Assembly (NCBI GenBank): GCA_964188305.1
Contig: OZ076893.1
Direction: 5' to 3' (one strand)
DNA from: Podarcis bocagei
Lineage: Eukaryota
Length of the DNA stretch: 64,000 nt
Shown: piece by piece, positions 1 to 29,100 of the stretch
Numbering within the stretch: the stretch's first letter is position 1
Layout: every line of letters starts with the position of its first letter
The notes under the pieces: generated by a model
Database searches by the model: none
The model's input: the letters and a program-made list of their open reading frames with translations, nothing else
Told to the model about the DNA's origin: nothing
Made by a program: the position numbers and the translations under genes

Positions 1-863
1 GCATACCACTTTGCAGTTCCATTAAGTAACTTTCAATTTCCCCTTTCAATGGCTGCTCTTTATCAGTCATAGAAACTGTATATGAGGTAGAACTGAGTGG
101 ATATTTTAGAGAGAGCTGGTGAGAAGGATGGACAGATTCCATATCTATTGGACAAGGCATTCCTAAAGGTAATGATGTGGCAACCATTTGGTGTGCAGAT
201 GTTGAGCTCTGCATGGACTGAATCTGAGTATTGTAGAGATTTAATTGCAAAGTGTTTGTAAATGGCTTTGATGTCAGTTCACTGGAAGATAAAGACATCA
301 CTGGAAGTAACTCGTCCTTTATAGGCACAGAAACATTGCAAGGAAATGGGTCTAGTAGATCCATTGGCTCCGTTTTGACCTTCAGAAGTTCTTGGTTGTG
401 ACTTTTCTTCATATGCCGTGTTAGGTGATCCTTCCGGCCAAATCTCTGTGCGCAATACTGACAGAGGAAGTCCTTTCTTCCAGTGTGCACTACCATGTGT
501 CTCCGGACATCCTTTCGGGTGTAAAACCGACGATCACAATGTTCACACTGGTGCTTTTTCTCCTTCACTCCACCTGATGATTTGCCTGCATGAGTTTTTA
601 GGTGCTCCAGCAACACCCCTGTGCTTTCAAATGTCTGCAAACATACTTTACAGGTGAGGTCACCACTTGTTGCAGCATGCAAAGCCAGGTGACGTTTAAA
701 CCCAAGCTTCGTGTTGTAGTTCTTTCCACATTCTTCACACTTAAAGGCCTCTTTATTGGGATTATGTGTATGTAGGTGATTCTTTAGGTGATCTTTTCGA
801 TGAAACATTTTCTCACAATAATTACACTTGTGGGTTTTCTCAGGAGAATGAGTAGCCATATGC
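1..863 (-). CDS. PLAG1: PLAG1 zinc-finger transcription factor, last coding exon (partial; continues beyond window start)
   Basis: Acceptor tgtttcaag|G at 864-865, then an open frame HMATHSPEKTHKCNYCEKMFHRKDHLKNHLHTH...CEECGKNYNTKLGFKRHLALH...CQYCAQRFGRKDHLTRHMKKSHNQELLKVKTEP...IKDE...LKGEIESYLMELQ. This has C2H2 fingers 3-7, SUMO-type motifs VKTE/IKDE/LKGE and a Ser-rich activation region. Confidence 0.98.
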
Positions 864-1390: not shown

Positions 1391-1682
1391 NNNNNNNNNN
1401 NNNNNNNNNNNNNNNNNNNNNNNNNNNNNNNNNNNNNNNNNNNNNNNNNNNNNNNNNNNNNNNNNNNNNNNNNNNNNNNNNNNNNNNNNNNNNNNNNNNN
1501 NNNNNNNNNNNNNNNNNNNNNNNNNNNNNNNNNNNNNNNNNNNNNNNNNNNNNNNNNNNNNNNNNNNNNNNNNNNNNNNNNNNNNNNNNNNNNNNNNNNN
1601 NNNNNNNNNNNNNNNNNNNNNNNNNNNNNNNNNNNNNNNNNNNNNNNNNNNNNNNNNNNNNNNNNNNNNNNNNNNNNNNNNN
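1391..1682. other. Assembly gap (292 N)
   Basis: Run of N. Confidence 1.
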
Positions 1683-1752
1683 CTCCACTAAATGATTTAG
1701 CTTTAGATGGCTTCTCAAGTTTCATGTGGTCGTTAAAGAAAGCAAAAAGGGA
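1394..1752 (-). CDS. PLAG1: PLAG1 ATG-containing exon (human exon 4 equivalent); only the 5' 70 nt are visible, the coding part lies in the N gap
   Basis: Poly-T acceptor ttttttttccag|TCCCTTTTTGCTTTCTTTAACGACCACATGAAACTTGAGAAG matches the start of human exon 4 as recalled. The 3' boundary is inferred from the recalled ~359-nt exon length, not seen. Confidence 0.8.
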
Positions 1753-4700: not shown

Positions 4701-6098
4701 AAAGGAAGCTACACCTATAGTGAACTGCAATTTTATCTACCCACATAGATTTAGTGGTAAGATTTTCAAGGATTTGTCTCAATACAGTGATGACATTGAA
4801 CAAATTGTAAGGCCTTAGAAGTACCTTGGAAAAGAACTAGAACTGCTGCCTTCTGATGTCAGGAAGTTGTGAGTAAGCTCAACCATATATGTTTGTGCAT
4901 GTGTGTGTAATTGCTATACTTAAAAAAAAATGGGTGAGACTATCTCAAGACCCTACATAGAGCACAATCACCTGCACCGTGGACCACAGGTAGTGGTGTG
5001 TCCAGCTGTACAGCAGGAGGGGTATGACTGAAAGAGAAAAACCAGTATGAGAAATGCTGAGCCCTTGCCCCAGCAACAGGTTTTTGTTCTTATTTTTGGC
5101 GACCAAAACCAGTCCCCCTAGCCACGTTTCATTTTGGTCTATGAGTTCAGCTACTTGTAATGGATTGTGGGGCTCAAAAGCTAGGGACAATGAATTCAGC
5201 AATCCTCTTTCACCACCTCTCTTTCACTTTAAATATACTGTGCTTTAGAGTTGCACTGCAGACCCATGTTTGAATGCTCAAGTCTACTGCTACTACATCT
5301 AGCTAAGGCCTCAAGAATATTTAATTTAAGGAGTTGAAACTATGTGCTGAATAAGAAAGATCTTTATTGCTCTGGAATCTAACCACTGAATTCATTACGA
5401 TGATGCAAATGCTAATAAATTAAGTGCAGCTATGTCCTCATATAAAAACAGTTTCAGCAGGCAGGATCCAAAGAGGCGTGTGCATGCATGTACAGCACTT
5501 CCAAGAGTACCGGGGTGGGGAAGTTGATCTTCCCTTACAACTGCACCACCTTGTGCTCACTGAATTCTCTCCAGAGTGTGCCCTAACCGTTAGAAGCAGC
5601 TGGGAGGAGAGAGAGGGAAAGGAGAGGGATGCACGCAAGGAGCTTCAGTAGAAAGGGTGGATCAGTAAAGCCCTAGTGCAAACATAGAACATTGCATATG
5701 GTCCTCTGGAGCCCAGCCATTTAAATTTGGTTATGCTGGTCCTGGAATAAATTTCTGATTAAACCACTCACTGGCTTATTATTTCTAGCTATCTAGATAA
5801 GCTAATTCAATTGTGGATGTACAGGCTGAGCAATGCAGACAGGATTTTAACATTAATGTTCGAATATTACACTTCTCAAAGACCAGCTGAAAAATTTTTG
5901 AGTCACAATGCCTATTTTCAGCTTCAGTATATTATTACTTATTCATATTTGTTCTTTCACAACTATAGGATGGATGATACAGTTATTAGAAACCATATTA
6001 AATCTACGTTAAAAAACAATACTTTTATATATTTTGTACCATTTTAAAAGGTGTTCATACTCAAAACAGATTTATGGTAGCCTCTGTTCAGTGCACAC

Positions 6099-6202
6099 CT
6101 GGTGATGGATAACGAAGAAAAACCTTCAGATTTTGGTCTTAACCAGTTCCACTGACATGTCTAGGAGCAAACCAGAATCCAGTGCTTCCCATTTTTGTTG
6201 AT
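6099..6202 (-). other. PLAG1: PLAG1 non-coding 5' leader exon (human exon 3 equivalent), 104 nt
   Basis: ttctgctttgtttttcag|ATCAACAAAAATGGGAAGCACTGGATTC...CATCACCAG|gtgtgc; resembles the recalled human exon 3 (AAAATGGGAAGGATTGGATTC...ACTGGCTAAGATCAAAGTCTGAGG). Confidence 0.8.
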
Positions 6203-8309
6203 CTGAAAAACAAAGCAGAAGGGGCTAGACATTAGTGAAGAGGTTGACTTCAGAAAACTAGATATCAATGGGAAAGAAAAATAGCCTGTGCTCATACTTT
6301 TTATGTTATATAACAATAATTAACAGTAATCATGATCCAGATTTTCTGCATGCAAAGAACAACATATCTTTTCTCTAGACAGGACTAGAAGACAGCAAGT
6401 CAGAAGAGGAGATAAGCTAGAAAGCTAATATAGTCTTCTCCCACCCTTGGTGCTAAGACAACAGTGTTGCCCAACAGTACACTCCTCTTTCTGGCTGCAT
6501 GCAATCTTCTAGTCTTCAGCAGACTAACAGAACCAGGAGCAGTTCTGCACATAGGATCCAAGTAACTGAATGTGCCCAGAGGAAGAATGTTCTGTGAGAC
6601 ACTGCCATTACATGAGAACCAGGAGGGATGATGTAATCAATCTTCACTACTCTTCTTGTTTGCGTCCTCATTCCCTGTTCTGTTCCTTCCCCTTGATTCA
6701 CTCACTTGTTTCCAGTCCTTTGCACATGGAATCAACATGCTTTACAATGGTCAATGCATACCAGCTTACCATTACTTTTTAATTTAATGCACGTAACTGA
6801 TAATGGTGAATTACAAAAGGTAGTAATTCCATAAGCAACGGCAATACCATAAGCTAAAGAACTCCAAAGATGAGAGTACAAGTGTTTGAGTTCCACTTTG
6901 AGGTGTGGGTGCATGCATGCATATGATTTGAATGAAGAAGTATCAGTTAGAAGAATAGTTAAGCACTCTTCCCCCATCCTGTCTCTTCACCAATCATACA
7001 TGTCCCTGAAGTGGGGCTTCCAGTTATGAAAAGGGATAATGGGCAGCCATTACACGCACTTATACATAACTTGCTCCATCGTCTGCAAGTATGAATTGCA
7101 ATATGGATCAAATTCAAATTCTTTTTTTAAAAAATAAGGACCCACCTTATTTCTTTAATTTTAAGTACTGTTAAACTGTTTTAATACTGTGTTTTAATTG
7201 TTGTAACCTGCCCTGGGACTTTGGGTGAAGGGCTGCTAATAAACTGTAGCAATAATAATACAAACAAAACAATTTCTCAATCCATTTACATTAGAGAGAA
7301 CAAATTGACAAGACAAACAATGTTACTTTTCATGTGTTGGACAAAGATTAGCTTTAAAATGAAAAGATTACTGTATTAGTTTCAAAGGCCTATTCACATA
7401 TAACACTAAGCCATGGGTTATATAGGCAAAGTGTGATTTGTTCAGCCATCCGAAGCATGCCCAGCAGACTAACTATGGTTAGACTAACAAAGCCATGGTT
7501 TGTTGTTGGCATATGAATCATGATTTGTTTTTAACTATGGTTTGTCATTATGTCTAAATCCTGCAGCCTCACCTAACCATGGTTTGTTTGACAACCCCAC
7601 CTCAGACTCACACCAAAAATGGTCATCCCACCATAGATACAATCATAAAATATAAAACTATAACATGCAATCTAAACAGTTTTAATAGGAAGCAACAAAA
7701 AACAGAGCAGACAATGTCTGAGAAATGTTAGAAGTACTAAAAGAAATAACTTATTTATTTCCACTGGGGATGGGCTAGGAAATTTTAGAATACAATCAAG
7801 AAAACAAAAAATATAGTTATTGTTGAATTCACTATTGTTGTTTACTTTATACAAAAGAGATACTGTTCAACATTTATACATTGATATTGTGTATGATTGA
7901 CTCAAGAATAAGATATGCACAATATTAGAGAGTATTCTCTCTTCCCACAACTTAAAATAGAATGAAAACAGCACTTATCAAAGCGAACACTTCCATTCAG
8001 ACAGATGTTCCTATTCTAGTTGGTTTCATATAAAAATTGTTTAATTAGGGTGAACACATGAAGACCAAAATGTAATACTTATTCCAGTACAATTTTTATT
8101 AATTATTTACAAAAAATTTCACACATCAGATACAATTTATATGTTCAAGTTAGCAATGTATTATTGTTAATACATTGCACATATTTAGTGTACTTAATAA
8201 TAATGATAGTAATAATAATAACAATTTTAATATTTATACCCCGCCCATCTGGTTGGGTTTCCCCACAATGCATCAAAGCCAATATTCTCACTGTAGTTCC
8301 TTACTGTAG

Positions 8310-8967: not shown

Positions 8968-10287
8968 TATATTACTGCTTCTTAATCATATATTTCAGTT
9001 TAAATTTTTTTTGGACATATTTATTAAGGCATATTTCTGCAGGTTTTTTTTTGTTTGTTTTGCTTTTAACAGACTGGATCAAATGCCAGTACGTTTATAG
9101 AACCAGAAAGTTTTCCTGTTCAAAATATTACAAAACAACCCACAACACTGGGCATATAAGAGTATTAACAGACTTGTTAGATCAGATGAAGTCTAGTGCA
9201 GCTTTGTTTTCAATGGTGAATAGCCAGATGCTTCTGTTCACAATCAAGACATGAATATGATTCTATTTCCCACCTGCAAGTGTCCCTAGCATCCAGTATG
9301 GAGAGTTATACTGTCTCTGAACGTGGGTTTAGATATTATGGTTGATAAGAAGTACCTTCAATTCGCAGAGCTGTGGTAGAATACTAAAAAAGATTCATGT
9401 ACAGGTGTGGTTAGGGGTAGTTTGACAGGACTGGTAGGGTTTATAGCATTCCCACTTCTGGGAGGCATCAGCCATCCCTGCTTGTAAACATGGGAATGCA
9501 CCTATAATTATAAATGTGAATAAAAGTCAATGTACAACCTAACTAAGAGCTCGTCCACTTGTTCTGTGTCTAAAAAAAATGGGGCCGGTCTGAGTGCTAT
9601 TCTGCTGGTCCCGTGCTTTCTAGGCCTGGGTCTGAATGGCTATGTGTTTGCCCCCCAGCTTTCGCCTAGGAAACATACTCTTGACTGCTGAATAGGAAAA
9701 AAACAACAATCCACAGAAAACCCAATTGCAATTTGGTCTGATTCAGTGGTAAACTGGGGGTTTCTCTGGGGAAAAGCAGCGGGACAAATGGAGGTGTGGA
9801 TGAGACCCTAAAAGGCATCATGATATGACGCGTCATGGTTGGACGAAGGAGACCAGAATCCTAAATCAGTTCTGTAGTCAATTTAAAGAATGAAATATTG
9901 TGCCCATTTTTCAGTCAAACACACCTGACCAGATTTTTGTAAGCATAAAAGGAGTCATCCTCAGGAATACCGGATTACATATGTAATAAACGTTTGTTAA
10001 AGCAAAAACATACAAAATAATTAAAAAAACCTTCACCCACCTTTCAAGCCAGACATGTAAATAACCACTTGCCTAGATATGTAGCAGCTCACAGGCAAGT
10101 GGGAACTCAGAACTCTTGATCTGCAGTACATCCACATCTCGTGTCTAGCCCTTTAAAAATAAAAAAAAATTCCATCGCAGAGGGCTGAGGAAACTTTACA
10201 CTTTCCAGGTATCAGAACCCAAAAAATGCCTTTTACCAGTTCTGTCTGGTTGACCAGCTACAGCTTTTCTTGAACAGTGATAACTTA

Positions 10288-26700: not shown

Positions 26701-28422
26701 CTGCAAAATGGCTTTAAAATTATACCATAAAGTCCACTATATGTCTTGTGTTCTTCCAGCGACTTGAAAACTAGCAGATTATTATTATAATTTAGGCTAT
26801 CTCTACACACACCATTCTAAATCCAAGACACAACAATAGAATTAAAATTCAGCCACCATACCAAAATCTTGAGTTGCATCACAGATAATAAATGCTAGGT
26901 CCAAACAATATCCACCAATTTCTCCTACAAAAGGGGTAAGCCAATCACTGTTTACACCTCAACAGCCCCCTTGGATTTAATGCAATCCACCAGGATAAGT
27001 AGCCACTGGCTTGCCTTCAGAGTTTGATTTATGGTTTTACACTTTAACAAATCCAAGCCAACTTTAGCCAGAACTTCTGCATAGGTGAGCATAGCTAGAA
27101 GAAAAGAGGAGCTGTCTCTTTAAGATACCATGCTCTGTCCCTGATCCCACGTGGAAACCAACATCAGCAGCACTTTCGCGTTTAGTTCTATGTGATGCAA
27201 GTTGAGGCATCATTTTTTAATAAACATGAGAAAATTGCAGAATACATTCTTCCCCGGAATACAAAATTGGTGAAAAAGCATGCTAAAGTAAGCCCCGGTT
27301 CTCCTCCAAAAGTGTAGTCTCACTATGTGTATTTTTCATTTTTTTTCTACGGCACGTTGCTTCCAGTCCATACTACTCTAACAGAAAGCACTTCACAGAC
27401 AGTGGACACAAACACCGGGATCCATAGGCAACGAAAAGGTACTCCATAAATCGGAAATATTTGCTCTTTTGCATTACATATCATAATTGGGTCGGGAGAA
27501 AAGCAATGCATAGGTATTACATTTCGCGCCACCTCCCCCCTTTCCCCCCACATGTGCCCCCCCAACAAACAAAGGGCACGAAAGCGAAGGTACAAAGTTG
27601 GCAAATGCAGCATTTATCTCCTGTGCAATCGCTCCTCGTTGCCCCAAAGTTGTGCAGCTCGTGCATTCCCACCTCCCACCACCATTCAAGGGAGAAAGGG
27701 GATTTTCACGTTCTCGCATTGTCGGGAACGAGCTGTAAAAGAGCTTTTGCCTTTCCAAAGCAGTCATCAACAACAAAAATAGGCATCAGTTTTAACTCCT
27801 TGCTCTCTGAGAGCTGAAACCCCGACGTGAGGGGACGCAGGGTTCAACCTGATCTCTTAGGGGAGAAATCGGGGGACGGAGACGATTTGGGGCATTTTTT
27901 AGGATTTTTTTGGGCTATTTTTTATTTTGTTATATGCCTCGGTTCTCCCTCCATTTTGGTTGTTTATGATACTGACAACAAGCTGTCCCTGCTCTCTCTC
28001 CAGATCTCTCCTGCTTCCAGTTAGAGACACCCCCCCACCTCCCCAATACAACCCACCCTCCAAACGCCTTCCCCAAACTCCTCTCTCGTACCCACGCAAG
28101 AAGGGAAAGAAAAGCCTCCGCGGCCGGTCCAAGTCAGGCGGGAGGCAATCTCGTCTCTTGATGGGGTGGGGGGGGGGGAAGGAGAGGAAAAAACTTTTGT
28201 CCAATAAAAAGCGGGAGGAGAAGGGCGCTGCACGCCCCAAAGCGACTCGGGAGCCCCCTAAAGCTTTGGCTGCGGGGTCCCCGCCGCCCCGTCCCGAGAG
28301 TGCAACCCGCCCGCGACATTTCTGCGCAAAATGTGGCCGCTTTGGTGCTACGGCTGAATTTATATTAATTTTCTCTCATTTTTTGGGCACCGCGGGCTCT
28401 TAATGTCTTCCGCTCCCTCCTC

Positions 28423-28923: not shown

Positions 28924-29100
28924 CGCGGGAGCCTCAGCATCCCCTCAGCGCCCTCTTCCCGCCTTTTACAGGGTTCTCCGATTTTTCTGTAATTTTTTCC
29001 CCATATTTCGGGCTGGACGCGGCGGGCCTGGAAATTGTTTGCTTTCCCCTCTTTCCAGCAGCCATTGTAGTGTATGCGCTGCGGTGCAGCTCAGCCTGCC
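28924..29100 (-). other. PLAG1: PLAG1 first exon (5' leader); TSS position approximate
   Basis: ACAATGGCTGCTGGAAAGAGG...TTTCCAGGCCCGCCGCGTCCAGCCCGAAATATG...CCCGCG|gtgagt with a consensus donor at 28922-28923, inside the CpG island; matches the recalled human exon 1. Confidence 0.85.

Follow-up and report, generated by a model that had tools for sequence, protein, structure and literature searches.

The last non-coding leader exon of PLAG1 probably carries a position-conserved, sequence-independent regulatory upstream open reading frame (uORF). Its start and stop are kept beyond neutral expectation in the nine tetrapods of a ten-vertebrate comparison, based on a window of 64,000 nt from the lizard Podarcis bocagei (contig OZ076893.1; the window is the whole stretch of DNA that was analysed) and nine further loci. 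Judging from these species, the uORF is at least as old as the tetrapods and probably as old as the bony vertebrates, with a retention time estimated at roughly 350-430 million years.

The gene had been named PLAG1 in the initial annotation, and we confirmed this assignment. Window positions 2-862 (minus strand) encode the zinc-finger and C-terminal part of the protein, and their translation is 89-93% identical to annotated PLAG1 proteins. The leader exon and a 17-codon uORF had also been placed on the minus strand at 6202-6099 and 6139-6192, and these coordinates, the ATG context and the TAA were all reproduced. The exon and the elements of the uORF are as follows.

6202-6099, minus strand: PLAG1 non-coding leader exon of 104 nt with AG acceptor and GT donor, the last before the first coding exon
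6203..6222, minus strand: 3' splice site, pyrimidine tract and AG (YAG/A in 10/10 sequences)
6093..6098, minus strand: 5' splice site GTGTGC (CAG/GT in 10/10 sequences)
6139..6192, minus strand: uORF of 17 codons, MGSTGFWFAPRHVSGTG and TAA (ATG at 6192-6190, TAA at 6141-6139)
6189..6195, minus strand: uORF start context AAAATGG, with A at -3 and G at +4 (strong context)
6142..6150, minus strand: last three uORF codons GGA ACT GGT (Gly-Thr-Gly)
6126..6141, minus strand: TAA stop and the conserved A-rich block right behind it

The exon is bordered by tttttcAG before base 6202 and by GTgtgc after base 6099. Ten exon bases precede the ATG of the uORF, and 40 nt of the leader exon follow its TAA. 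A second possible donor, AAG/GTTT (6122-6124, minus strand), lies 15 nt past the uORF stop; it occurs in the lizards and the snake only and is absent in the other sampled species. RefSeq models of the echidna splice through the leader exon, and to judge from the genomic sequence it is presumably also included in the mRNA of this lizard. A 17-codon ORF within 104 nt is frequent by chance, but its retention in nine other vertebrates exceeds chance.

Orthologous DNA around PLAG1 was gathered via the annotated PLAG1 proteins of many vertebrates, by word search and through a protein cluster. Several MOS kinase proteins of birds (349 aa) are grouped with amniote PLAG1 in the 90% identity cluster of P0007, which is probably a clustering artefact. 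The nine loci L001 to L009 are, in this order, those of a skink (Tiliqua), a pit viper (Protobothrops), an alligator, a warbler (Acrocephalus), the horse, a murine rodent (Arvicanthis), a toad (Bufo), the bowfin (Amia) and the echidna. Together with the lizard of the window they make up the ten species compared, a sample without primate or human, turtle, marsupial or shark.

In each of the nine loci the orthologous leader exon was found, and the first coding exon lies 1.4-7.1 kb downstream of it. In 10/10 sequences exon base 11 is the first letter of the ATG, both A at -3 and G at +4 are invariant, and so are the letters TAAG. The uORF of every one of the nine tetrapods runs for 17 codons to a TAA. 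The bowfin uORF has the same start and is closed by a TGA at codon 15, which leaves 14 codons; behind this premature TGA the letters ACTGGTTAA persist. The encoded peptides are MGSTGFWFAPRHVNGTG in the skink, MGSTGFWFPPRRVSGTG in the warbler, MESTGFYSSPRRVRGTG in the echidna and MGTSTVWSPPRSNSGTG in the toad, while those of the horse (MGRIEFRSLPRRVNGTG) and the rodent (MGRAGFCSLPRRVNGTG) agree with the pattern MGxxGFxxxPRxVxGTG. GAYCAA follows TAAG in eight of the ten sequences (GGTCAA in the echidna, GACCAG in the toad), and then comes an indel-prone exon remainder. From the acceptor to the stop, 0/64 alignment columns are gapped, the 54 columns of the uORF included, as opposed to 17/42 past the stop, where at least five separate indel events are found. 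The exon lengths, measured by homologous boundaries, are 104, 104, 104, 100, 100, 99, 99, 99, 92 and 98 nt. Thus, the conservation of the leader exon and its uORF that the initial annotation had suggested holds across the sample, with the same start, the same length of 17 codons and TAA in every tetrapod.

This retention was compared with codon-blind evolution. An HKY tree fitted to the 54 nt of the uORF had a length of 0.97 substitutions per site, and an ORF-bearing ancestor was evolved along this tree in 5000 runs, with a sequence scored as intact when the ATG was present and the first in-frame stop stood at codon 18. With the substitution rate of the uORF itself, the intact 17-codon ORF was kept in all nine tetrapods in 0.18-0.5% of the simulated runs (P 0.002-0.005), and with the flank rate in 0/5000. 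The mean number of parsimony steps per site was 1.04 in the uORF versus 1.5-1.7 in the adjoining exon and intron sequence. From these steps, a hand calculation gives a hypergeometric chance of about 0.001 that the start and the stop, six letters in all, lie entirely among the unchanged sites. The probability that at least five indels all fall past the stop is roughly 0.01, as estimated from the alignment.

The initial annotation had taken the shared peptide pattern as a sign of a conserved-peptide uORF, and this part of it was not supported. Parsimony steps are spread evenly over codon positions 1, 2 and 3 (15/14/16 in the tetrapods; 18/16/22 with the bowfin included), without a third-position excess. 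The pooled NG86 pN/pS was 0.66 in the uORF frame, 0.64 and 1.11 in the two other frames, and had a median of 0.76 in a column-shuffle control (p 0.31); at this p value it is not below the shuffles, nor is it below frame +2. The maximum likelihood omega (Goldman-Yang) was 1.02, and in the profile likelihood an omega of 0.5 was rejected (2dlnL 4.3), as were lower values. Other codon-frequency models, an alternative squamate topology, restriction to amniotes or addition of the bowfin gave an omega of 0.88-1.32. Synonymous sites are not neutral here, as substitutions accumulate across the whole uORF at about 0.6 times the rate of the flanks; the constraint nevertheless ignores codon position, which selection on a peptide would not. 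The common pattern MGxxGF..PR.V.GTG is what about 70% nucleotide identity gives in any frame.

It could still be argued that a nascent peptide, chiefly its C-terminal PR.V.GTG, stalls elongation or termination in the exit tunnel and thereby blocks downstream initiation. The strict length of 17 codons and the invariant Gly-Thr-Gly-stop in nine tetrapods would fit such a role; codons 15-17 vary at third positions only in the tetrapods (GGA/GGG, ACT/ACA, GGT/GGC), and Arg11 is preserved across AGA/CGA/AGG changes. The synonymous-only change of the Gly-Thr-Gly codons is a suggestive hint of a peptide role with a chance of about (1/3)^4, but neither it nor the Arg11 pattern is significant because these codons were chosen after the data had been seen. 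Moreover, the bowfin uORF stops before GTG yet retains those letters. Well-known uORF peptides that stall at termination are AMD1 MAGDIS and that of cytomegalovirus gp48 uORF2. The PLAG1 uORF is like these in having invariant residues directly before the stop and unlike them in showing no codon-level purifying selection, and we know of no Gly-Thr-Gly-stop stalling motif. Known stalling uORF peptides rely on C-terminal residues (PMC7530721). Because of the 15/14/16 position counts and an omega of about 1.0, conserved-peptide stalling is nevertheless unsupported, and we consider it distinctly improbable. A different explanation is an element at the nucleotide level, such as an exonic splicing enhancer or a binding site of an RNA-binding protein that defines a short regulated exon, with an open frame that is incidental and unused. 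The substitutions are codon-blind, and the conserved block that crosses the stop, together with the letters ACTGGTTAA kept past the TGA of the bowfin, hints at nucleotide-level constraint. The flanking intron is conserved over ~390 nt in sauropsids and the echidna, and it contains a more deeply conserved block.

5826..5892, minus strand: conserved intronic block with CAGCTG, about 210-270 nt downstream of the leader exon

This block has invariant runs common to lizard, snake, alligator, bird, echidna, horse and rodent, and it sits in a wider conserved intron flank (5812-6098). As no usable splice donor follows, the block is probably regulatory rather than exonic. Conserved intronic flanks often accompany regulated exons, and here they may point to a regulated (cassette) 5'UTR exon, although they are only suggestive in this respect. 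However, an element of this kind leaves unexplained the joint retention of the ATG, A at -3, G at +4 and the in-frame stop, with no earlier stops and no indels (the P value given above considers substitutions alone), and the remainder of the same exon tolerates indels. In addition, no discrete motif stands out, as rate heterogeneity among the 54 uORF sites was not detectable (gamma alpha about 998). A nucleotide-level element with an idle reading frame therefore appears unlikely to us, if worth keeping in mind. A conserved RNA structure was also considered and rejected (RNAalifold consensus of -2.4 kcal/mol with one compensatory pair; single-sequence fold z of -0.30), and no Rfam family matched window positions 5600-6500 at E values up to 1. 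Finally, the leader exon might be protein-coding and provide PLAG1 with an N-terminal extension, as in two echidna RefSeq models (P0188 and P0123) that translate it in another frame. This is scarcely credible, and it was rejected on two grounds: the exon lengths vary (92-104 nt), so that phase is not kept, and the remaining frames are interrupted by stops in several species. Both echidna models, isoforms X1 and X2 (L009 14404-14457, 18670-18768 and 24304-24459), begin in upstream exons and contain a shortened first coding exon, which they read outside its normal frame. They are probably annotation or prediction artefacts.

We therefore return to a regulatory uORF that is conserved in position and independent of its peptide sequence. 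Scanning ribosomes would encounter the uORF AUG in an optimal context, and most of them would initiate there. They would translate the 17 codons and terminate at TAA-G, an efficient stop, and a fraction would resume scanning towards the PLAG1 start, which lies about 150-160 nt beyond the uORF stop in species where it is visible. Selection would preserve the act of translating, that is the start, the frame, the position of the stop and the start context, and not the peptide. In this way the uORF would brake or gate PLAG1 translation irrespective of its peptide sequence, alongside the other upstream AUGs of the leader. From the conserved arrangement we infer that the uORF is translated, that translation of the main ORF is lowered or gated and that reinitiation follows; probably the uORF lowers PLAG1 output as one gate among several.

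Vertebrate uORFs that are conserved in position and independent of sequence are a known class: their start and stop are conserved and their peptide is unconstrained, and they are expected to lower translation of the main ORF and to allow reinitiation. The PLAG1 uORF resembles this class in being short, with a strong-context AUG in the 5' leader, a conserved start and stop and an unconstrained peptide. It differs in a length that is fixed at 17 codons throughout the tetrapod tree, a stricter constraint than the class calls for. Such exact conservation of length exceeds the needs of a sequence-independent brake. Conserved-peptide uORFs (CPuORFs) identified by the ESUCA pipeline include, according to the animal survey, those of PTP4A1, eIF5, MKKS, MIEF1 and SLC35A4, and were required to have a Ka/Ks below 0.5 and significantly under negative controls (PMC7530721). 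As in the CPuORFs described there, the PLAG1 uORF is found in the orthologous leaders of a broad range of taxa (nine tetrapods, and shortened in the bowfin) and its best-kept residues are C-terminal (PMC7530721). Its Ka/Ks does not follow theirs, with the NG86 ratio close to the shuffle median, an omega of about 1 and a value of 0.5 rejected. PLAG is absent from the main text of this survey (PMC7530721). A search of the available literature found no paper linking PLAG1 with uORFs, and the relevant-looking co-occurrences were reference-list entries or concerned unrelated topics.

The geometry of the remaining leader involves two further exons.

28924..28940, minus strand: last 17 nt of exon 1, AUG first, ATGCTGAGGCTCCCGCG followed by GTGAGT
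1682..1752, minus strand: visible start of the first coding exon, with the acceptor before 1752 and a further AUG at 1725 (positions 1391-1681 are masked N)

Exon 1 is CpG-rich and ends at 28924. The initial annotation had stated that the AUG at 28940 would extend the uORF if exon 1 were spliced directly to the leader exon. Under this hypothetical 28924>6202 join, the AUG is indeed in frame, as 17 nt and 10 nt add up to 9 codons, and none of the ten leader exons has an in-frame stop within its first 10 nt. The bowfin retains the exon-1 AUG, its distance of 17 nt to the donor, and the donor. This AUG overlaps the stop of a 43-codon uORF in exon 1 (AUGCUGA, 28934-28940, minus strand), and the bowfin has AUGUUAA there; in the two sequences compared, this stop-start overlap in exon 1 is kept between the lizard and a ray-finned fish. 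A candidate exon 2 was sought between 6203 and 30000, where no homology was found to the upstream DNA of echidna, horse, rodent, bird, alligator or toad. The bowfin alone matched in this interval, in exon 1 and in two blocks of intron 1.

27939-27978, minus strand: intron-1 block, 95% identical to bowfin over 40 nt
27111-27175, minus strand: intron-1 block with CACGTG, 85% identical to bowfin over 65 nt

Both blocks are deeply conserved non-coding elements a short way downstream of exon 1.

On the other side of the uORF, the AUG at 1725 has a weak context and lies 67 nt past the uORF stop, counted along the assumed 6099>1752 spliced form. In skink, snake, bird, horse and rodent (L001, L002, L004, L005 and L006, each at 9884-10000) the matching AUG opens a 27-codon frame, which is in frame with PLAG1 and is closed by a TAG 6 nt before the main ATG. 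In these five species the main ATG lies 117 nt into the first coding exon. The leader part of this exon is near-identical from toad to mammals.

The leaders of GCN4 and ATF4 work by delayed reinitiation at multiple uORFs, in which a short permissive uORF is followed by an inhibitory one next to or over the main start. The PLAG1 leader resembles them in geometry as a series of short uORFs, with a 67-nt spacer and a next uORF that, in other species, ends 6 nt before the main ATG; it differs in that its last uORF does not overlap the main ORF. It is tempting to speculate that the 17-codon uORF is the permissive first step of an ATF4/GCN4-like switch, in which ribosomes would pass over the inhibitory 27-codon uORF seen in other species and initiate at PLAG1 when ternary complex is scarce, although we regard this as quite unlikely. 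If true, PLAG1 translation would be coupled to the integrated stress response or the nutrient state, and the switch would be set by inclusion of the exon or by the in-frame AUG of exon 1. In that case the fixed length of the uORF and the A-rich block after its stop would help to keep ribosomes competent for reinitiation.

PLAG1 regulates growth in development and is an oncogene that is activated by promoter swapping. In tumour fusions, exon 1 of the partner gene is joined to exon 2 or exon 3 of PLAG1 (PMC11734380). Should the leader exon described here correspond to that exon 3, the oncogenic transcripts would carry the uORF along. The uORF also illustrates clearly how a shared peptide pattern is produced by nucleotide conservation alone. 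In summary, an old uORF in the leader of PLAG1 offers a concrete handle on the translational control of PLAG1 dosage, and one that is cheap to test.
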